A stretch of 64,000 bases of DNA, taken from assembly GCA_021613535.1 (NCBI GenBank), contig CP075493.1, positions 1,302,001 to 1,366,000 on the forward strand, in the 5' to 3' direction. A model generated the notes under the pieces. The model was not told the origin of the DNA and made no database searches. It worked only from the letters and a program-made list of their open reading frames with translations. This document shows positions 49,270 to 64,000 of the stretch, in pieces. Numbering within the stretch: position 1 is the stretch's first letter; each line of letters starts with the position of its first letter. Source of the stretch: Adineta vaga. Taxonomy: Eukaryota; Animalia; Rotifera. Position numbers and translations under genes: made by a program.

Positions 49270-50627
49270 ATGTCGTCATCTCGTTCATCAAGTGTTTCGT
49301 CTGCATCCGGCGGATCAATATCATCAAAAACAGCACAAGATGAAAGCATCGCTAGTGATCTTGTTGTTACGAAATATAAAATGGCATCGGAAATAACTCA
49401 ACGTGTTCTACGTGAAGTTATTGATCGTTGTGTTCCAGGTGCATCAATTAAAGATACATGTATTTTCGGTGATAAACGTTTAGATGAAGAAACATCACGT
49501 GTTTACAAAAAAGACAAAGATGTTAAGAAGGGCATCGCATTTCCAACATGTTTATCTATCAATAATTACATTTGTCATTTTAGTCCATTAGTATCTGATC
49601 CAGATATGATATTGAAAGATGATGATGTCGTTAAAATTGATTTAGGTTGTCATATTGATGGATATGTTGCTGTTGTTGCTCATACACTCATTGTTGGTGC
49701 AACACGTGAAAAAAAAGTTACCGGACGACGTGCTGATTGTATTCTTGCTGCATATTATGCTGCTGAAGCTGCTCTTCGTTTAATTAAACCAACAGAAAAT
49801 AATACAGCTGTAACTGAAATTATTGATCGTATTGCCAGTGCTTATCATTGTAAACCTGTTGAAGGTATGAAACAAGAATTTAGATTTCTTGAATATTTAA
49901 GGACAAGTATTTTTTGTTAGGTATGATTTCATATCAAATGACACGTGGTATTATTGATGGAGAAAAGAAAATCTATCAAAACCCAAGTGATATGCAACGT
50001 CGTGAAATTGAAAAACAAGAATTTGCATTACATGAAGTCTATGCTGTTGATGTTTTGGTCTCATCCGGTGAAGGTAAACCACGTGAAACAGATATTCGTA
50101 CAACAGTCTACAAGAAGAAAGAGTTTGTTTATCAACTACGTATGAAATCATCACGTGCATTTTTATCTGAAGTGGAAAAACGTTTTTCATTAATGCCATT
50201 CACATTAAGACATTTCGAAGATGAAAAACGTGCACGTATGGGTGTTATTGAATGTGCAAAACATGATCTTGTTGAACCCTATCCAGTTTATCAAGAAAAA
50301 GAAGGAGAATTTGTTGCTGAATTTAAATTTACACTTCTCTTAATGCCCAGTGGACAAATGAAAATAACCGGTTTACCAATTGATTTAGATTTATATGAAT
50401 CTGAATATAAAATTGATGATAGTGATATTAAGCAATTATTAACAAGTTCAACACAAAAAAAGAAGAAAAATAAGAAGAAGAAGAAAGGAACTGCCGCATC
50501 AGGTGCAACAGCTCTTGACAATGTAGAAGCCGTTGAAGATGACGGTGATGAAGATTTTGAAGATGAACCCGAAAAAGACGCAAAAAAGAAATCAACAAAA
50601 TCAAAGAAAACAAACAAAAAAGCTTAA
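49270..50627 (+). CDS. PA2G4: Proliferation-associated 2G4 / EBP1 (intron 49865-49920)
   Basis: [10 protein letters not shown]...[20 protein letters not shown]...[10 protein letters not shown]; [16 protein letters not shown]; Lys-rich tail. Confidence 0.96.
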
Positions 50628-51485: not shown

Positions 51486-54400
51486 ATGTTCTCTTTAAAT
51501 AAAAAAATGTTTCTGGCGATATCATCTCAAAGATTATTTTCTCGTTCATCCATTCTTTCGGTATATAAACATAGAATATCTTCAATATCTAGTCATTCAA
51601 ATAATAAACGTCATCGAAGTTCATCACATTCTCATCGAGTGAATTCAAATAGACCAAATAATCAAACGGATACATTACGTCGACTCTTTCAACCGATTGA
51701 TATTAAACCAATGGTTGCAACAGAAAAACTCAATTCATCAACATCGAAAGATTTCGATGCAAATATTGGACAAGAGTTAACTGGTGGAAAAACACTTGAT
51801 CGAAGTAATGACCAATGAAAAAACGAAATAGCATATCAAAGAAAAATCTATTCTTTTTTTTCTTCATTTAGATGCACTTCTTCGTATTATCACAGATTTT
51901 TATCGTCGTGATGAAATCAAAAAATTAGCTTCTGATCAAGGTCTTGATATTCGATTATTTCAAGATGCTTATGTTAGTTTTAGAAAATTTTGTATTCAAT
52001 CAACAGTTTTACCTGTAGATTTACATATTGTTTTAAGTGATATCATTTCTGGATCTGGTACGATTTATTTCTTTAAATTTTCTTCAACGAATTACAATTT
52101 GCTTTTTCTTTCCCAAAGGTCATGCAACGGATATTTTTCCGTATTTTTTACGACATGCACGAGAAATGTTTCCACATTTAACATGTATGGATGATTTAAA
52201 GAAGATAAGTGATCTTCGAGATCCAGCCAATTGGTATCCAGATGCACGAGCTATTCAAAGAAAAGTTATTTTTCATGCTGGTCCAACAAATAGTGGAAAA
52301 GTAGAAAACAATTCACAAATCAACTATATACCTATTTTTTCGAAATTCCTTAGACTTATCATGCACTTCAACGTTATATGAATAGTGAAAGTGGAGTTTA
52401 TTGTGGGCCATTAAAACTATTAGCATCAGAAGTTTTCTATAAAACAAATGCAGCAGTAAAGATATTGACGAATATCTGCATTGAAAAATCTGCTTTTTTT
52501 CTTCAAAATAGGGTACGAAGTGTGATTTAGTGACAGGTGAAGAACGACGGTATGCTGATCCAGAAGGAAAACCAGCTAATCATGTTGCATGTACAGTGGA
52601 AATGACGAATTTAACGACACTTTGTAAGGAATATTTAAGAATGATATCAAATATATAAACTCAATTTTTTTGTATAAATAGATGATGTGGCAGTCATTGA
52701 TGAAATTCAAATGATGCGTGATCCACAACGCGGGTGGGCATGGACACGAGCATTACTTGGTACGTTGACTTTTTTTTGCTTCTTCAAACTGATTCATCGA
52801 ATTGTTCGTTTAGGTATTCAAGCTAAAGAAATACATCTTTGTGGCGAAAGTTCAACAATTAGACTTATTCAAGAATTAATGATAACAACGGGTGATGAAG
52901 TGGAAATTCGAGAATATAAACGATTAACAAAATTAAATTATCAAGAACGAGCATTAGGTAACAAATATATAAATTGATTCTCAGCGATCGAATTCATGAA
53001 TGTATAGATTCATAATATAATATTCGTGGCAGAAGACGATAGAAAGAGAACTATCTAGCTTAACTTACGCTTTGTAGTAATTATTTAGAAACATTTGATA
53101 ATGTCAAACCTGGTGATTGTTTCGTCTGCTTCAGTAAAAATGATATCTTTCATATAACACGTGAATTGGAAAGGCGTGGACATGAAGTTGCCGTTATTTA
53201 TGGTTCATTACCACCAGGTAAATGATCAATTTCATTCTAGATTCTCAATAAAAAATCAATTGTTTCTTTAGGTACAAAGTTGTTACAAGCTCAACGATTC
53301 AATGATCCAAATGATTCATGTAAAATAATGGTGGCAACTGATGCGATCGGAATGGGTTTAAATTTGTATGTTGATTCTTTTCTTGTTTTGTTTTTTTCAA
53401 ATATAATTGATCTATTTGAATCATTTTAGGAGTATAAAACGTATTATATTCTATAGTCTTATGAAACCACAATTGAATGAACAAGGAGAAAAAGAAAAAG
53501 ATACAGTGACAACTTCACAAGCTCTACAAATTGCTGGTCGAGCAGGAAGGTTAGAAAATTTCGTTCAAATTAACATACTTACTGAATGGTATTTCTTTCT
53601 AGATTTGCAAGTGCTTTTCCTGATGGTGAAGTAACGACATTTCGACGTGATGATCTACTTTTATTAAAAGATATTGTTAGTCGACAAGTGGAAACAATCA
53701 AAGTACTAATTTTCATTGAATAAATCACTCTACTATCTCATTTAGCGTGCTGGCCTTCATCCAACTGCTGAACAAATTGAAATGTTTGCGTATCATTTAC
53801 CTAAACATTCACTTTCAAGTTTAATTGTATGTTTTAATCTTAATCAAAGATTCCAATTTCTGAATTGGTTTATTTAGGATATTTTTGTACTTCTATCGCA
53901 ACTAGATGATAGTGTATTTTTTATGTGTAATGTTGAGGATGTGAAATTTCTCGCTGATATTATTGAACATGTTCCATTACCACTCCGTGCTCGTTATACA
54001 TTTTCATGTGCTCCAATTAATAAGAAAATGCCGTTTGTTTGTACAATATTTTTGAAGGTAAGATTTCACTATTCATTTTTGTTTTCAATGAAAAGATTTC
54101 GAATGATTTTTAGTATGCTCGTCAATTTAGTCGAAGTGAACCGACAACATTTGACTGGTTAGCAAAACAAATCAATTGGCCATTTGAAATTCCTAATACA
54201 ATTATGGATTTAGTTCATTTAGAAGAAGTTTTTGATTGTTTAGATCTGTATTTGTGGTTAAGGTAAATAAGGGATATGAAGAACGATTATATTCATATAC
54301 ATTTAATTCTGTTTAGTTTTCGTTTTGCTGATATGTTTCCAGATAAAGAATTAGTTCGAGGAATTCAAGCAGAACTTGATCAAATTATACATGCTGGTGT

Positions 54401-54908
54401 ACAGAATATTGTAAAACTTATTCATCGAACAAATCGTATTGAAGATGCGAAAGATATTGCTGTAACAACAGAGAAAACAGTAGAAGTTGTTGCAGCAATA
54501 AATGAAGAAACCAAAGTCATCGATGGAGCGAAATCTAATGCACCACAAATACGATCAATCATTGGATTAGAAGAAGAGCTCGATGTTGATACAACAAACA
54601 GAACACCTGTTCAGGAAACTAAAACTGAAAAGCAAGCACAATCATTGACGATGAGTACACGTAAAGTTTTACATTCATATTTAAATGCATTAAAAACTCA
54701 AGCAGAAACGCGTGGACATGAATTTAATGAAACAGAAGATCTGATTAAACAATTAATATCAAAAGGTTTACTTAGTCAACGTTCTGTAGATAAACTTGAA
54801 AAACAACTAGCAACATTTAATGATAATGATAAAACGAGTAGTAAAAATCGAGAAACAACAAAAACATTTACAGGTCATGGCACATATAAGAAAGGCAAAA
54901 GAAAATAG
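51486..54908 (+). CDS. SUPV3L1: Mitochondrial ATP-dependent RNA helicase SUV3 (many exons)
   Basis: Presequence-like N-terminus; [24 protein letters not shown]; [23 protein letters not shown]; [11 protein letters not shown]; QIAGRAGR. Confidence 0.96.
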
Positions 54909-55484: not shown

Positions 55485-56420
55485 CGGTTATTCCCTTTTC
55501 TGAAAGAAAGGGTTATACGCTTCTTAAATAGGGTCGTTAAAATGCTTAAAGTTTGTTTGTTTGTCCAAGCCAATCAGGTCAAAGCAGCGTATAAATCGAT
55601 GAAAACTTACCCGATCATCGGACAACGATTCGTCATATGTAATCGAGATCGAGGAATATGAATCTTGGGTTCCTTTCCCAAAAATATTTTTCTATGAACC
55701 ATAATTAATTGATTGTTATTTCTTATTTGTCTAATCCAGTCAGATTGCAGCAATATAAAAATTCATGAAAATTTACTAATAATCATCTTCATATGATTTA
55801 CCCAAAAGTAATCGAAGCCGAGGATTTCAAATCTGATGTTAGCTTTTCATAATTCTAATCAATTATTATAATTATTTCGAAATTGAAAATAACCTGTTAT
55901 TAAGCATAAAAGAAAAAATTCTGACTGTGAATTCTTTAATAAAGCTACTGAGTTCATTGAAGAAATGTTTTTTCAGTAGAAGTTGAGGGTGTGAGTCTGC
56001 AAGGGAGAAAAAGCGGATCCTGGACACCCAAATCCTATCAAACTTTCGGGCCCTCGTGGCTCCCCATAAATCCTGGCATCTCAAAAAAGCTGACTCTCGT
56101 GAATCCTGAAAGATACTCATGGGTTATCATTGGTCATCATGAACTGTGTGATCGCAGGAACTATGAGGATCCAGGATCCGCCTTTTCCCCTTGTGTGGAT
56201 CTATGTATGTGCGTACTCTGTCAAGGAACACTTACATTCACACCTTATTCCTTCCACAGAAAGGAGCGTCATATGGAAAAAAGTTTCTGTGCGCTTTTGT
56301 GCCAGTGTCAAAGGTCAAAAAACCATTTTCTTCAAGACTGTCTTAAACATCGGAAACCGAGAGTAGATTAAGAGTAGGATGATAGATAGGTGGGGTCAAT
56401 GTGAAGGATCAAGGGTTAAA
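55485..56420 (+). repeat. Dispersed repeat / probable transposon remnant, related to 26330-27075
   Basis: Shared 5' segment including a CCAAT box; GC-rich body; ends near GGGTTAA. Confidence 0.5.
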
Positions 56421-57411
56421 AGTTAAAGGCTGCACAAGATCAAAATATTGCTCTACCCTTTAGTACGAGCTAAGTACGCGCTTTCGATAGATATAATACG
56501 AGATTACAATCAGTCGGTCGTTATTTATTCATAAAATCATTAAAACTTTAGTAATATTGAAATAGAAACTATTGATCATTCTAGAGATGATAATTCAATA
56601 AACGAACACATAGGTAGAATCTAACCCGTAGCAGGTTTGAGAAAAATAAAGTAAAGTAAAATTTGTCTAGTTTGAACACTATTGGAATTAATGAAAAAAC
56701 GTAGGGGAATAAGCAAATCATATAAGAACATCTTAGAGCTACGATGGCATAGACATGCAACAGTCTCAGTTAACTCGGTGAGAGTCAGACTCGAACTTAG
56801 TTTATACTTTCATGTGTTTTCTTTTGCTTTTGAGAATATTTGATACACCAGCAATTGTTCATACAAAAAATTTATCTCGCACATCACGATAAGATGAACC
56901 GGCTTTGTTTTCTTCAATTCAATTAATTTTCTTGTTAAGATCTTTAAGGATAGACGTATTTGAAATAAAAATTGCCTTACGTCGAACTAATAGAATGAAA
57001 TTAGTTTATAAGGGTATGGAGCGTGAGCGTGAAAAGTAGAGACTATCGGTATCTACCCTCAAAGATTTCCTTTTCTGATTGAACTTTTGTTGAATATCAC
57101 ATGCAAAAATATCCTTTCTTAAAACGAACTCTTTTGTAAAACTAAAAAATTACTAATGAAAAATACGTATCTTGAGTGTATATTGACACTGATAATCACA
57201 AACGTCAGACGAAACTCCACTCAATACATACGTTAACGCCATCTTTCTGCATAAAAGAACTATTCGCTTTTGTTGAAATCGTCAGATTTCATTATCTTCT
57301 TCAAAAAACAAAAATACAATACTATCAGTAAAGCGAATTTCTTTTCATAACAAACAAAATATATTCAATAGCTTGTATTCTCAACAAACTTTTGTGGAAT
57401 TTAAAGCGAAT

Positions 57412-60400
57412 ATGTACACATTTTCAACATTACCGATTGAACTCGTCTATCGAATTTTGGATCATCTGTCTGGTTTTACACTATTTTGTTCAATGCAAAA
57501 TGTTTGCCAACGTTTTAATCAAATTCTGAACATTTATCATCGATATGAAGTAAGTTTCCAAAGTGCTTTACCTATTTTATCATCTGCTCAAGCACACATG
57601 AGTCTTGCAATATCGAACTTAATCAGTTTACTCAAAGAAAAAACAAATTTCACAATTCCAAAGCAATTTCCACGAGTCAACCAAACAAAACATTGACTCA
57701 TGCCATTAAAACAACCTTTCTTCTCCCTGTTCTTTACTATCTATGCGCATAGAATATACATCTTATTAAACGTGCACTCATGTGCCGCACAACAATAAAT
57801 CCGCAGCATTAAAACATCTTTCTCCTTTCAACCAAATGTCACTATTGCAACTCTTAAACAATTCCACAACTATCTCTGACACCCACCGAACAAAATAAAC
57901 TGAACTGTTTTATATTCTACCCCGACTCCATACGATCTTTCGCAATCCAAATCTAAAAATAACAATCCAAAACCATTCGAAATCAACAAGTATCACTACC
58001 TTCAGTACAGTACTCACTCCACTCATTCGACGATTCGAACATTAACTCACTAATAATCAGACAAGCACTGATTTCTCTTTTCACTCCATGAAACCAGATC
58101 GAACACTTTCACACACTACAGCCACACCTCTTGTATAATCCTATATCTAATTGAAAAACCTTACTCTAAAGTTCCGATTGCTTTACTCACATTGTCGAAA
58201 GGAATACTCTATACATAGACACTCACCGCACTCGATCTCGGGCACAATCAAATCGGCCATCAAGGGGCACAACATATTGGTGATGCCTTGCGAATAAACA
58301 CAGTAATATTCATTCGCTCTTGTCCTAATTGACACATCTATGCTTTCTCTCCTCTATAGACACTCAACACACTAAATCTCGAGAACAATGGAATCGGCGA
58401 TCAAGGAGCACAACATATTGGTGATGCCTTGCGAATAAACACGGTAATATTCATTCGCTCGTGTCCTGATTGACACATCCATGCTCTCTCTCCTCTATAG
58501 ACACTTAACACACTAAATCTCGAGAACAATGGAATCGGCGATCAAGGAGCACAACATATTTGTGGTGCCTTGCGAATAAACACGGTAATATTTATTCGCT
58601 CTTGTCCTAATTGACACATCGATGCTCTCTCTCCTCTATAGACACTGACCACACTAAGTCTGCGATACAATCAAATCGGCGATCAAGGAGCACAACATAT
58701 TGGTGATGCCTTGCGAATAAACACGGTAATATTTATTCGCTCTTGCCCTAATTGACACATCGATGCTCTCTCTCCTCTATAGACACTGACCACACTAAGT
58801 CTGCGATGCAATCAAATCGGCGATCAAGGAGCACAACATATTGGTGATGCCTTGCGAATAAACACAGTAATATTCATTCGCTCTTGTCCTGATTGACACA
58901 TCCATGCTTTCTCTTCTCTATAGACACTTAACACACTAAATCTCGAGAACAATGGAATCGGCGATCAAGGAGCACAACATATTGGTGATGCCTTGCGAAC
59001 AAACACGGTAGTACTCATTTGCTCTTGACCTAATTGACACATCCATACTCTCTCTGCTATGTAGACACTCACCACACTAAATCTGGAGGACAATGAAATC
59101 GGTGATCAAGGAGCACAACATATTGGTGATGCCTTGCGAACAAATACGGTAATATTTATTCGCTCTTGTCCTAATTGACACATCCATGCTCTCTCTCCTC
59201 TATAGACACTGACCACACTAAATCTGAAGAAAAATGAAATCGGTGATCAAGGAGCACAACATATTGGTGATGCCTTGCGAACAAACACGGTAATATTTAT
59301 TCGCTCTTGTCCTAATTGACACATCCATGCTCTCTCTGCTATGTAGACACTCACCACACTAAATCTCCGATACAATCAAATCGACGATCAAGGAGCACAA
59401 CATATTGGTGGTGCCTTGCGAATAAACACGGTAATATTTATTCGCTCTTGTCCTGATTGACACATCCATGCTCTCTCTCCTCTATAGACACTGACCACAC
59501 TAAATCTCGAGATCAATGGAATCGGCGATCAAGGAGCACAACATATTGGTGGTGCCTTGCGAATAAACACGGTAATATTTATTCGCTCTTGTCCTAATTG
59601 ACACATCCATGCTCTCTCTCCTCTATAGACACTGACCACACTAAATCTGCGATACAATCGAATCGGCCATCAAGGAGCACAACATATTGGTGATGCCTTG
59701 CGAGCAAACACGGTAATACTCATTTGCTCTTGTCCTGATTGACACATCCATACTCTCTCTGCTATGTAGACACTCACCACACTAAATCTGGAGGACAATG
59801 AAATCGGTGATCAAGGAGCACAACATATTGGTGATGCCTTGCGAACAAATACGGTAATATTTATTCGCTCTTGTCCTGATTGACACATCCATGCTGTCTC
59901 TCCTCTATAGACACTCAGCACGCTAGATATCGGGGGTAATCAAATCGGCCATCAAGCAGCACAACGTATTGGTGATGCCTTGCGAATAAACACAGTAATA
60001 TTCATTCGCTCTTGTCCTAATTGACACATCTATGCTTTCTCTCCTCTATAGACACTCAACACACTAAATCTCGAGAACAATGGAATCGGCGATCAAGAAG
60101 CACAACATATTGGTGATGCCTTGCGAATAAACACGGTAATATTTATTCGCTCTTGTCCTGATTGACACATCCATGCTCTCTCTCCTCTATAGACACTCAG
60201 CACGCTGGATATCGGGGGTAATCAAATCGGCCATCAAGGAGCACAACATATTGGTGGTGCCTTGCGAATAAACACGGTAATATTCATTCGCTCTTGTCCT
60301 AATTGACACATCCATGCTCTCTCTCCTCTATAGACACTGACCACACTAAATCTGCGTTACAATCAAATCGGCGATCAAGGAGCACAACATATTGGTGATG

Positions 60401-61272
60401 CCTTGCGAATAAACACAGTAATATTTATTCGCTCTTGTCCTAATTGACACATCGATGCTCTCTCTCCTCTATAGACACTGACCACACTAAATCTGCGATA
60501 CAATCGAATCGGCAATCAAGGCGCACAACATATTGGGGATGCCTTGCGAATAAACACTGTAATATTCATTCGCTCTTGTCCTGATTGACACATCCATACT
60601 CTCTCTGCTATGTAGACACTCACCACACTAATTCTGAAGGACAATGAAATCGGTGATCAAGGAGCACAACATATTGGTGATGCCTTGCGAATAAACACGG
60701 TAATATTCATTCGCTCGTGTCCTGATTGACACATCCATGCTCTCTCTCCTCTATAGACACTTAACACACTAAATCTCGAGAACAATGGAATCGGCGATCA
60801 AGAAGCACAACATATTTGTGGTGCCTTGCGAATAAACACGGTAATATTTATTCGCTCTTGTCCTGATTGACACATCCATGCTCTTTCTCCTCTATAGACA
60901 CTCACCACGCTAGATATCGGGGGTAATCAAATCGGCCATCAAGGAGCACAACATATTGGTGATGCCTTGCGAATAAACACGGTAATATTCATTCGCTCTT
61001 GTCCTGATTGACACATCCATGCTCTCTCTCCTCTATAGACACTCACCACACTAAATCTCCGATACAATCCAATCGGCGATCAAGGAGCACAACATATTGG
61101 TGATGCCTTGCGGACAAACACGGTAATACTCATTTGCTCTTGACCTAATTGACACATCCATACTCTCTCTGCTATGTAGACACTCACCACACTAAATCTC
61201 GAGGACAATCAAATTGGTGCTCAAGAAAGAAAGTATCTCCGAAATACTTTTGGAAATAGGTTAACGTTGTAG
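57412..61272 (+). CDS. F-box plus 22 ribonuclease-inhibitor-type LRR protein (exon 1 57412-57549; 21 84-nt exons starting at 58219+141n; last exon 61180-61272), ~664 aa
   Basis: MYTFSTLPIELVYRILDHL F-box ends at a phase-0 GTAAGT donor; each exon encodes TLxxLx[LI]xxNxIGxQGAQHIGDALRxNT; all introns GT-AG and phase 0; no stops or frameshifts seen. Confidence 0.9.
58219..61200 (+). repeat. Tandem repeat, 141-bp unit (84-nt exon plus 57-nt intron), 21 full copies plus a partial copy
   Basis: Exon starts fall at 58219, 58360, 58501 ... 61039, 61180, an exact 141-bp period. Confidence 0.97.
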
Positions 61273-61859
61273 TTGGGATTCGAGGAACATTGTTTTTTAG
61301 TTCTCTTTTCTGGAGAATTGTTTTAGAGGAAACCGATGTGGTGAGGAATGAATACACAGTGTGCTTCGAAGTCGTATTGATCGTACAATAACGTGTTTTG
61401 TTTTATGCTCTTGATTTCCGGCCGTGAGAGATGTGTCTATGATCTAAGTTGTTGATTTGTGTGTGTCCGAGATAGCGAAATCCCATGTTTGAAATGCACT
61501 ATAATTTATTAGTTGAAGTTTGATGGGTATCATATGATATTTTGTGAAAGTGTCTACTCTTAATATAATGTCTTTTGAAAATTTTTCAATAGTGGAAAGG
61601 TTATAAAGAAGAAGGACGACCGTTGATCCGTCTTATGAGCCTTTTAATGGGTCCGCTGCACTTATTCCCATCGCTGATCTATTAGGAACGACTGGGAAAT
61701 TATTTCTTAAACATTCTGTTGTGCGTGAAAACGTAGCAAAATATTCTTTCGAACTTTATTTTGAATATTTCTCATAATAGAGAGTTGGGGTTGACGGCAA
61801 TATAAAGTGGATGACGAGTTTGACAACTTTATTTAGTTGCTTCTTTGATTTGACGTTTG

Positions 61860-63990
61860 ATGTCTAATGATAGAAAAATGTTTTGTATTCGTACATCTTT
61901 CAAGATAAAAAAGAAAGTTTTAGAGAAAGGAGTGTATCTCAGTCTCAACAAACTAATGTTTAGAAACACAAGTTTGGATATACATCGCATCTGGATGCAA
62001 CTTCCGATATATGCGAGCTTCAACGAAAGACGGCGAAATGAATTTGTAAACACAAAGAGTGTTTCATGTTTACATAGTGACCCGTACTTATATTCCCTTC
62101 CTATTCATTATCATTCTGAGAATTACAAGAGTATGATTAATTCGCGAGTGGTAAAGTCGTTCTGTCTTGAGTTTACACATATTTCTTTTTGAATATATTC
62201 ATCATCGGTGTCGATGAAACCGAGTATACTAGATCTATCGAAATTTTTCATGCTATGCATTCAAATAATTACACATGATAATGAACATTTAGTTGTTGAA
62301 TGTACATCCAAAATAGTTTTTTTTTATCTAATATGACGATTTTGTTTATTTGAGAAATCAATGTGAACTGCCTTTCTGAATTCATCGATTGTGATGAACA
62401 TTGTTCTAAAATATACCATCGACGCATGTATCATGACATTTGTTTCATTGAACCAATGGCATATTGATCACTGACTTTTTAACTAGGAATATATTGATGA
62501 AGTATATAATTGTCATATTTACACTGAATGGAAATTTTCTTTCATATAATATTGGTATTTTAACAAAGATGGGATTATATCTGACATGAATTAACAAATA
62601 ATATCTAACATTAGTCGAAAAGAGATAAAAAAATTAAGGATAAACTTTGTTTGGTTTGATTTAATCAATTTTGATTGCAATGCTCTAAATATATTTGTAA
62701 AAAATATCGAATTCATATAATAGTTACCTATAACCTTTGAACAATTTCACAGCATCCAAACAACGAGAATTCAAACGAGTGTTGCATCATAACCAAGATA
62801 AAAATGAAGACATTATCAAACGTAATTCGAAAGACGAGCTTGTGAATTTTAAAATAATCGATTGTGAACGGATATTATCCACTGTCATAATTAGGTAAAT
62901 AACTATTGAATCCATACAAAAAATTCAATAAACTCTTTTTCTTTATTTTTTAATACTTGATGTTTCCAGATAAAAACTTTCTCTTCCATCAGAAAACATA
63001 TACATTTTGACCAAAATTATAGAGTATATGATTGTTCGTTCTTTTTTCAATGTTTTAAATTCTAATGAAAACAAATAATAATGTTGATGTCTTGCGTAGA
63101 AGAAGTTTTTCTTTTCTACTTTCATGGCAAAAGAGATAAAAACTTCCATATTTAGACATGCGAAATGAGAACAAAATTAAAAATGAACATTCCGTAAATC
63201 TCATCTATATTTCTACTCATTTTGTTTCTTATTTATAGACAAGCAGTAATTTATTAGAGCAACTCTATTTTCATTTAATTACCATAAGTGTTCTAATCTT
63301 TTTTGATCATTGTCTTTGAAGGTAATATTTGTTTAAAGCATCATATGATATATGCTTCTCATTATCGTCTTTCGATATATCCCTATTATTTTATTCTTCT
63401 ATAGAATAATGTTGTCTATTGATTTATGTAAATCTAGGTTTACAATAGAAAATCTTCTGGAATACTCGACTGTTTTTTTCGAAACCTATTTAATTCTCAT
63501 TTGATCGTATCTTACGTTAATATTACGAGAAACTATGTTTTATTTCAGATTCTCTCAACATTAAAAATCTATTGTGGAACACTTTCATATTATTTTCCTT
63601 CGACACAATTTGAGATCAATTGCCTCTATACTTTCCGAAATATACACAATACATTATGACTTTCTCATATAGCTGAATGGAATATTTACTCGTTGATAAT
63701 TCAATATATTGTAATCAATTGATTTGTTTATTATCGTGTGTTCCATAATTTCGTTATTTATCAGCAAATTTATTACGTCAATATGATCCTACACAACCAA
63801 ATTTATATGACATGATGTTGATTAATTTGACATATGCATCTTTTAAATTCAAATCCGAAGCAGTTGATATTTTTGAACAATTTTTTATCAATCATTTTCC
63901 TTCTATTGAAATTTTATTCATCGCATCAGATATTAGATGCATGAAAGCCAACTCTGAAAATAAAAAAGGAGTTTTCCAGAACCTTTTTGG
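61860..63990 (+). pseudogene. Degenerate F-box/LRR-like family remnants
   Basis: LYSLP (~62090) and LYTFP (~63625) motifs resembling the LYTLP-type motifs of the other F-box genes here; frames broken. Confidence 0.3.
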
Positions 63991-64000
63991 GGGTTCGGCC

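Follow-up and report, generated by a model that had tools for sequence, protein, structure and literature searches.

A family of F-box genes with one-exon leucine-rich repeats on a dispersed repeat of the bdelloid rotifer Adineta vaga

The stretch of Adineta vaga DNA analyzed in this work, referred to as the window, comprises 64,000 nucleotides of contig C1 (CP075493.1; C1:1302001-1366000) in an assembly of 100.8 Mb with six contigs and about 30% G+C. At 57412-61272 of its forward strand, the window carries a gene in which a single F-box exon is followed by 22 leucine-rich repeats (LRRs), with one exon for each repeat. This gene is intact, transcribed, and conventionally spliced. The scaffold residues of its repeats are under purifying selection, and repeat positions 6, 8, 9, and 11 change at or above the neutral rate. 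The reading that we favor is that the gene belongs to a carrier-borne family of about 40 copies that probably serves as a repertoire of substrate-recognition subunits for SCF (Skp1-Cul1-F-box) ubiquitin ligases, with a likely use in genetic conflict. The locus is of interest mainly at the level of the family.

Gene structure and transcription

The first-pass annotation of this stretch described an F-box exon followed by 22 open phase-0 LRR exons with an exact period of 141 bp, a description that was borne out by Tandem Repeats Finder and by a parse of the splice signals. Tandem Repeats Finder identified a single array at 58215-61225, with a period of 141, 21.4 copies, 89% matches, and 0% indels. 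In the parse, the 22 LRR exons start at 58219+141k, and each start is preceded by AG. A GT is located directly 3' of each of the first 21 LRR exons, all exons are open, and every 57-nt intron contains in-frame stops. The duplicated unit is not the exon alone but the 84-nt exon together with its 57-nt intron, forming a cassette of 141 bp. The gene is composed of the following parts.

57412-57549, + strand: exon 1 of 46 codons, comprising the ATG start codon and the F-box; it ends in phase 0, directly 5' of GTAAGT
57550-58218, + strand: intron 1, 669 nt, GT..AG
58219-61179, + strand: 21 cassettes of 141 bp, each consisting of an 84-nt exon (28 codons, phase 0-0) and a 57-nt GT..AG intron
61180-61272, + strand: terminal exon, encoding the initial half of LRR 22 and a short C-terminal tail and ending in the stop codon TAG
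61273-61376, + strand: 3' untranslated region of at least about 100 nt, seen in contigs from runs X2 and X9 that span 61233-61376

The predicted product has approximately 664 residues, in which the N-terminal F-box is joined directly to a solenoid of 22 LRRs. All internal LRR exons are of equal length and symmetrical (phase 0-0), so that any subset of them keeps the reading frame. The motifs that had been quoted as examples of variation between repeats (DLGHNQ, NLENNG, SLRYNQ, SLRCNQ, NLEDNE, NLKKNE, NLEING, NLRYNR, DIGGNQ, ILKDNE, and NLRYNP) are all found in the array.

Information on transcription was derived from assembled contigs of two A. vaga runs that were placed on 57200-61500. The library type of these runs was guessed to be RNA, and the presence of spliced joints indicates that they do contain RNA. 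A joint of run X2, 57549>58219, links the F-box exon to the first LRR exon, with the removal of 669 nt bordered by GT..AG. Two further joints, 59852>59910 and 60558>60616, each correspond to the removal of one 57-nt intron with GT..AG at the predicted borders, and the 159-nt contig containing the latter joint matches exons 17 and 18 over 137 nt with zero mismatches. In several contigs, the sequence of one exon stops at its border and is followed by the opening bases of an LRR exon. Contigs (61185-61376) also extend over the terminal exon and about 100 nt past the stop codon. With respect to the 5' end, the partial NCBI model I4U23_021784, located at the family copy on contig C4 (C4:14587870), has an exon of the upstream gene spliced onto the F-box exon. 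This model implies a usable AG acceptor 6 nt before the ATG, for which the counterpart in the window is at 57400-57411. Real transcripts may thus have a non-coding first exon that is located upstream, or host exons may be trapped by them.

The equal length and the phase of the internal exons, which leave any subset in frame, would be compatible with diversity generated within an individual, either by alternative splicing of exon subsets or by somatic recombination of cassettes, as a functional analogue of the variable lymphocyte receptors (VLRs) of lampreys. A few contig joints indeed skip many cassettes (58583>60474 and 58724>61179). These joints, and a third one at 57546>59347, were rejected as evidence of exon skipping: they are anchored by only 21-29 nt that are found in many cassettes and in paralogs, and some of the long-skip joints carry the CAA codon of a paralog. 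Furthermore, the germline gene is complete and conventionally spliced, and there is no incomplete gene flanked by donor cassettes. Diversification within the individual is consequently considered very improbable.

Given that long, near-identical tandem repeats are prone to misassembly, and that only 22-39% of the sampled words were present in short-read DNA runs, an assembly artefact and a decaying pseudogene were also considered as explanations of the array. The period, however, is exact and free of indels, the 22 exons are open, and the splice sites are intact. Spliced RNA contigs match the window copy without mismatch, at least 20 paralogs have the same architecture, and the scaffold codons show a ratio of non-synonymous to synonymous divergence (dN/dS) of 0.17-0.30. 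An artefact or a pseudogene is hardly credible in view of these data, and it is the least probable of the explanations considered.

Domains of the product and distribution of variation

The F-box segment encoded by exon 1 reads LPIELVYRILDHL; it has the length of about 45 residues and the LPxE..I..L motif that define F-boxes. Exon 1 scores 24.2 bits against the Pfam F-box family PF00646 (cut-off 20.5) and 23.1 bits against the F-box-like family PF12937 (cut-off 24.3). Among 27 database relatives of the segment, 24 match PF12937 (best E value 1.4e-8) and 17 match PF00646. Most of the database proteins that match the F-box are unspliced open reading frame (ORF) fragments.

All 21 full repeat units have 28 residues, with the consensus TLTTLNLxxNxIGDQGAQHIGDALRINT. 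Position 10 of the repeat is Asn in each of these 21 units and in 218 of 224 units across the family. When searched one by one, single LRR exons match the Pfam family LRR_6, with an E value of 0.005 for the terminal exon. The available structure model covers residues 1-262 of a homologue from Adineta steineri that has the same register, namely, an F-box followed by 28-residue units. It has a mean predicted local distance difference test score (pLDDT) of 82.6, with values of 83-98 in the LRR part, and places strands at repeat positions 4-6 and helices at positions 13-25. The best Foldseek matches to this model are NOD2, ribonuclease inhibitor (RI), NLRX1, and NLRP3 (E values of about 1e-14 to 1e-12). 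These structural matches indicate that the repeats, as modeled in the homologue, are of the type found in RI and in NOD-like receptors (NLRs), in which LxxLxLxxN/CxL is followed by a helix and which adopts a horseshoe fold, and not of the cysteine-containing 26-residue type of FBXL proteins. The canonical FBXL class, with repeats of about 26 residues and Cys at the asparagine-ladder position, was also ruled out directly by the 28-residue period and the Asn at position 10.

From the strands and helices of the model it follows that positions 6, 8, 9, and 11 would correspond to the strand end and the strand-to-helix loop. In LRR proteins, the concave face with its ascending rim is built from these elements. 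The model puts position 14 in the first turn of the helix, beside this rim. The mapping of variable sites onto a structure, as had been proposed, thus places them at predicted ligand-facing positions of the homologue.

The codons predicted to be variable, here termed x codons, are codons 3, 4, 6, 8, 9, and 11 of the repeat. Variation within the array is concentrated at positions 6, 8, 9, and 11 and is less pronounced at positions 3, 4, and 14. At codon positions 1 and 2, the nucleotide diversity of codons 6, 8, 9, and 11 amounts to 0.27-0.73, and that of the first position of codon 14 to 0.45, as compared to approximately 0.09 for the introns, while most positions in the helix half of the repeat are without diversity. 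The first-pass annotation had assigned the variation to the x positions and had regarded both the helix half and the introns as nearly invariant. The assignment to the x positions holds in that first and second positions of x codons segregate more often (10 of 12) than intron sites (13 of 48; Fisher p=6e-4) or scaffold positions (9 of 44; p=1e-4), but it is incomplete, since positions 14, 22, and 26, which lie beyond the original set, vary as well. The helix half is mostly uniform. The introns are not nearly invariant: in addition to their 13 variable sites, they fall into two or three subtypes that covary with residue 26 of the preceding exon.

The divergence between cassettes of the same array was determined as Nei-Gojobori sums. 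For this gene, the non-synonymous divergence (dN) of x codons is 0.43, the synonymous divergence (dS) of the other codons is 0.17, and the intron distance is 0.098, at a scaffold dN/dS of 0.17-0.30. Non-synonymous divergence at x codons is thus about 4 times the intron divergence. In eight paralogous arrays, x-codon dN was found to be 1.8-6.2 times the intron distance, and the excess is present in all nine arrays tested. Similar results were obtained by parsimony counts on a tree that comprised 224 cassettes, taken from 20 arrays; this tree was built on all 141 positions, which should bias the counts against the variable codons. Per non-synonymous site, codons 8, 9, and 11 change at 2.8-4.5 times the intron rate (binomial p=6e-4, 2e-3, and 1e-4, respectively), as compared to 0.55 of the intron rate for the 22 non-x codons.

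Turnover of the family and the repeat that carries it

The 141-bp cassette has at least 368 matches in the genome at 89-100% identity, distributed over many loci on five of the six contigs. For the F-box exon there are at least 150 matches, at least 39 of which have an identity of 85% or more. A genome-wide search for further arrays of 84-nt exons and 57-nt introns, which had been suggested as a check, was successful: 20 paralogs were fetched, and their arrays contain between 1 and 24 cassettes. In 19 of the 20, the F-box exon is located about 850 bp before the first LRR core, and nearly all paralog cassettes have AG/GT borders and open exons. Intron 1 is about 92% identical between copies, similar to the non-coding flanks. 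Some paralog arrays contain a cassette that is broken by an in-frame stop and by the replacement of its acceptor with AC, or have 0.2-1.3 kb inserted between cassettes, and the family therefore includes decaying or interrupted members.

For 158 of the 224 cassettes, the nearest relative is found in the same array, and arrays therefore expand mostly locally. The exception is a trio formed by this gene and the copies at C4:14.59 Mb and C2:15.72 Mb. The C4 copy is the closest to the gene of the window, and the two are colinear cassette by cassette except for 4 cassette indels and a few replacements. In the germline, arrays thus gain, lose, and rearrange cassettes, the probable mechanism being tandem duplication or unequal crossing-over. 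The idea that symmetric exons permit the gain and loss of whole cassettes without frameshift is in this way confirmed at the germline level, both by the range of cassette numbers among paralogs and by the indels relative to the closest copy. The family is concentrated toward the chromosome ends, with 30 of the 39 close copies in the distal 20% at either end (p=3e-6).

Every F-box-LRR copy that was examined lies in a dispersed repeat with shared sharp ends. In the window, this repeat extends as follows.

55488-64000, + strand: dispersed repeat unit carrying the gene, continuing past the end of the window, recognized by homology ends common to about 20 copies

On the left, homology of 90-95% begins at 55487-55491 of the window, at the same base to within 2 nt, in about 20 copies on five chromosomes, and there is no similarity between copies to the left of 55487. 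Downstream of the gene, homology continues at 92-97% up to position 64000, and the identity of the unit as a whole is in the same range. The right end can be seen in other copies, where it is equally sharp and located about 5.44 kb past the stop codon in about 20 of them (query 440-451). The flanks are unrelated at the two left ends (the window copy and the C4 copy) and at the three right ends that were compared. The unit has a size of about 8.4 kb plus the array, which would amount to about 11.2 kb for the window copy if it is complete, its right end being beyond the window. Dispersed copies, identical termini, and unrelated flanks are characteristics of transposable elements, and all three were found.

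Self-comparison of a composite carrier unit revealed no terminal inverted or direct repeats, six ORFs in the carrier flanks contained no Pfam domains, with no transposase or reverse transcriptase among them, and no Helitron-like ends were seen by eye at the ends of the carrier. Outside the gene, the carrier has no ORF above 120 residues (the longest downstream ORF has 120 amino acids), and the 5.4-kb downstream arm contains no conserved coding block, its diversity being flat at 0.05-0.15. This arm comprises a short tandem repeat with units of approximately 70-73 bp, at a position equivalent to about 300-620 nt past the end of the window. Close to where the carrier ends on the right lies a stretch of 120-145 nt with at least 15 further genomic copies at 86-96% identity; it resembles a small nested repeat, perhaps of the type of miniature inverted-repeat transposable elements. 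Upstream of the carrier, the window contains an M24 peptidase-fold gene similar to PA2G4 (49270-50627) and a gene for an SUV3-type RNA helicase that is split by short introns (52037-54908). The carrier starts about 580 bp past the end of the helicase gene.

Lineage-specific expansions of LRR and other repeat-protein families have been described in A. vaga, as has the mobilization of intron-containing host genes, including a member of an LRR family, by Penelope elements (Arkhipova et al. 2013, PMC3846280). This precedent is in agreement with an alternative explanation according to which a mobile element carries the gene as cargo: transposition of the unit, with its approximately 8.4 kb plus array, would account for the size of the family, and the protein would either act on behalf of the element, for instance, by directing host factors to degradation in the manner of some viral F-box proteins, or be a passenger without a role for the organism. 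The sharp ends shared by about 20 copies on different chromosomes, the unrelated left flanks, the proximity of the helicase gene, the high identity over the whole unit, and the lack of any other long open frame or conserved segment in it all fit this explanation. However, none of the terminal repeats, enzymes, or Helitron-like ends that were looked for was found, and the purifying selection on the scaffold together with the intact splice sites of nearly all cassettes indicates that the protein itself is selected, although the beneficiary of this selection is not specified thereby. The cargo explanation is regarded as unlikely, and it is compatible with a function of the family in SCF-dependent recognition rather than exclusive of it.

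Proposed function and relation to known systems

By analogy to established F-box proteins, the F-box would dock on Skp1-Cul1 and the LRR face would select proteins for ubiquitination, so that the protein would act as the substrate-recognition subunit of an SCF-type ubiquitin ligase. The evolutionary pattern and the analogies suggest that the family provides a repertoire of rapidly evolving binding surfaces, and for the same reasons it would most likely be used in a genetic conflict, be it with pathogens, with mobile elements, or with other foreign proteins. The earlier proposal of an intracellular receptor that recognizes and degrades its targets is supported as far as the F-box/LRR architecture, the one symmetric exon per repeat, and the variable predicted ligand face are concerned; the receptor role itself stays at the level of a prediction.

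Several observations weigh against this assignment. The F-box score is near the Pfam threshold, and when the F-box exon and the profile of its 27-member family were compared by sequence to solved structures, no match was obtained (E values up to 1). The F-box part of the homologue model forms three helices, at low confidence (pLDDT of 43-63), and the model is that of a homologue and not of the window protein. A transcriptome study of fungal infection in rotifers contains no mention of F-box or LRR genes and provides no expression link between the family and infection. In addition, gene conversion that homogenizes introns and scaffold could inflate the ratios measured within arrays. Finally, a comparison of this gene to the C4 copy over 15 clear positional orthologues yielded an x-codon dN of 0.038, an intron divergence of 0.027, a synonymous divergence of 0.048, and a scaffold dN of 0.016. 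The scaffold rate is below neutral (ratio 0.49, p=0.04), whereas the rate of the x codons does not differ from neutral (ratio of about 1.2, p=0.68). Over the latest interval, change at the variable sites is hence free of constraint, and it is not demonstrably driven. The claim of diversifying change at ligand-facing sites therefore stands for the arrays and the family, at codons 8, 9, and 11, and not for the closest copy; the proposed comparison of dN with intron divergence came out accordingly, with a clear excess within the array and none relative to that copy.

The neutral rate relative to the closest copy, along with the evident concerted evolution within arrays, would also be expected if these were ordinary regulatory F-box proteins in which relaxed constraint on exposed positions is combined with gene conversion, in the absence of any selection for diversity or role in defense. 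However, the x codons are part of the same 84-nt exon as the scaffold codons, and a conversion tract would homogenize them too, so that selection is needed to keep the differences. Moreover, codons 8, 9, and 11 exceed both the intron and the synonymous rates on the tree built on 141 positions, and the excess is repeated in all nine arrays. Relaxed constraint is for these reasons decidedly unlikely, and a recognition repertoire of SCF adaptors is preferred.

A more far-reaching version of this preferred reading can be formulated, in which dozens of F-box-LRR genes were spread through the genome of an asexual animal by a mobile unit that carries them, and in which their rapidly recombining cassettes constitute a germline-diversifying, recognize-and-degrade repertoire against pathogens or mobile DNA, perhaps extended by splicing. 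This version appears quite unlikely at present. If true, it would represent an arm of innate immunity that is based on ubiquitin-ligase adaptors instead of NLR or Toll-like receptor signaling.

In terms of domain order, the closest comparison is to the FBXL receptors (Skp2, FBXL2, FBXL3, FBXL5, and FBXL20, and the plant proteins TIR1 and COI1), in which an N-terminal F-box likewise directly precedes an LRR solenoid that displays the substrate-binding surface, as that of the rotifer protein would. In contrast to the 26-residue, cysteine-containing repeats of FBXL proteins, the rotifer repeats are of the 28-residue type LxxLxLxxNxIGdxGA. The rotifer array is, furthermore, long and nearly homogeneous, with one exon per repeat and 1 to 24 cassettes among paralogs, and the family was found mainly in bdelloids. 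As modeled, the repeats share their class and horseshoe fold with the LRR domains of RI and NLRs, but the rotifer gene has no NACHT or other nucleotide-binding domain. In the RNH1 and NLRP genes, exon borders also coincide with repeat units, yet one exon holds an A+B pair of repeats, whereas one repeat corresponds to one exon in the rotifer gene. Like the lamprey VLRs, the rotifer proteins would form a binding surface from LRR cassettes that vary in number and sequence. VLRs, however, arise when donor cassettes are inserted somatically into a germline gene that is incomplete, while the germline gene of the rotifer is complete, its cassettes are ordinary exons, and the germline sequence and RNA contigs gave no sign of somatic change.

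The most similar gene organization is that of the LRR-ROCO as well as the NB-ARC-TPR genes of the brown alga Ectocarpus, in which each 72-nt phase-0 exon encodes one repeat and the concave face is under diversifying selection (Zambounis et al. 2012, PMC3341825); as far as the accessible part of a 2024 follow-up indicates, it deals with the same candidate receptors (PMC11378527). Both systems have one phase-0 exon of fixed length per repeat, the number and order of the exons vary between loci, and an immune role has been proposed from sequence alone. The features that characterize the algal genes recur in the rotifer gene, with 21 full symmetric exons, 1-24 cassettes, and an excess of change at the predicted concave face, although the rate relative to the closest copy is only neutral. 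The two differ in that the effector domain is an F-box instead of an algal ROC-COR GTPase or NB-ARC domain and that the exons have 84 instead of 72 nt. In the rotifer, exon and intron are duplicated jointly, which yields a tandem array with a strict period of 141 bp in which all introns have 57 nt, and the gene resides on a dispersed repeat.

Expansions of F-box families provide a further parallel. Thomas reportedly described in 2006 lineage-specific F-box expansions under positive selection in Caenorhabditis and plants. Selection in these expansions affects the substrate-binding part, the genes are located on chromosome arms, and the substrate-binding domains of the nematode F-box proteins are FTH/FBA2. 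The nematode expansions differ from the rotifer family in that they arose by gene duplication and point change, without LRRs or exon-cassette arrays. According to the accessible parts of other reports, F-box expansions in Caenorhabditis and plants are under positive selection (PMC8120010, PMC8665587) and F-box families have been linked to mobile elements (PMC12062965); judged from these, the shared traits would be a large, young, species-specific family, positive selection, and a proposed role in immunity or conflict.

The family offers a clean animal example of evolution by cassettes of exon plus intron, for which the closest documented example found is that of the brown algae. It is also a case of an intron-containing, host-type gene that was amplified on a dispersed repeat, and as such it bears on the puzzle that gene families of bdelloids reach copy numbers above those of transposons (Arkhipova et al. 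2013, PMC3846280). It is an open question how the bdelloid rotifers, which are ancient asexuals, keep up with their parasites. Because the predicted binding faces evolve at or above the neutral rate and repeats are gained and lost in frame as whole cassettes, the approximately 40 predicted ubiquitin-ligase adaptors are a concrete and testable candidate for recognizing non-self or selfish DNA.

A literature search found no paper on bdelloid F-box-LRR genes, on their cassette architecture, or on their pattern of selection. In bdelloid database proteins, LRRs of the same type are joined to F-box, RING/B-box, U-box plus kinase, ADP-ribosyltransferase, and NACHT domains, which suggests a wider system in which LRRs are paired with effector domains, with the proviso that some of these models may be gene-prediction fusions. 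One member of the family has been present in GenBank since about 2010 as a "leucine rich repeat containing protein" (ADD91459.1), with a gene model that reads through intron 1.

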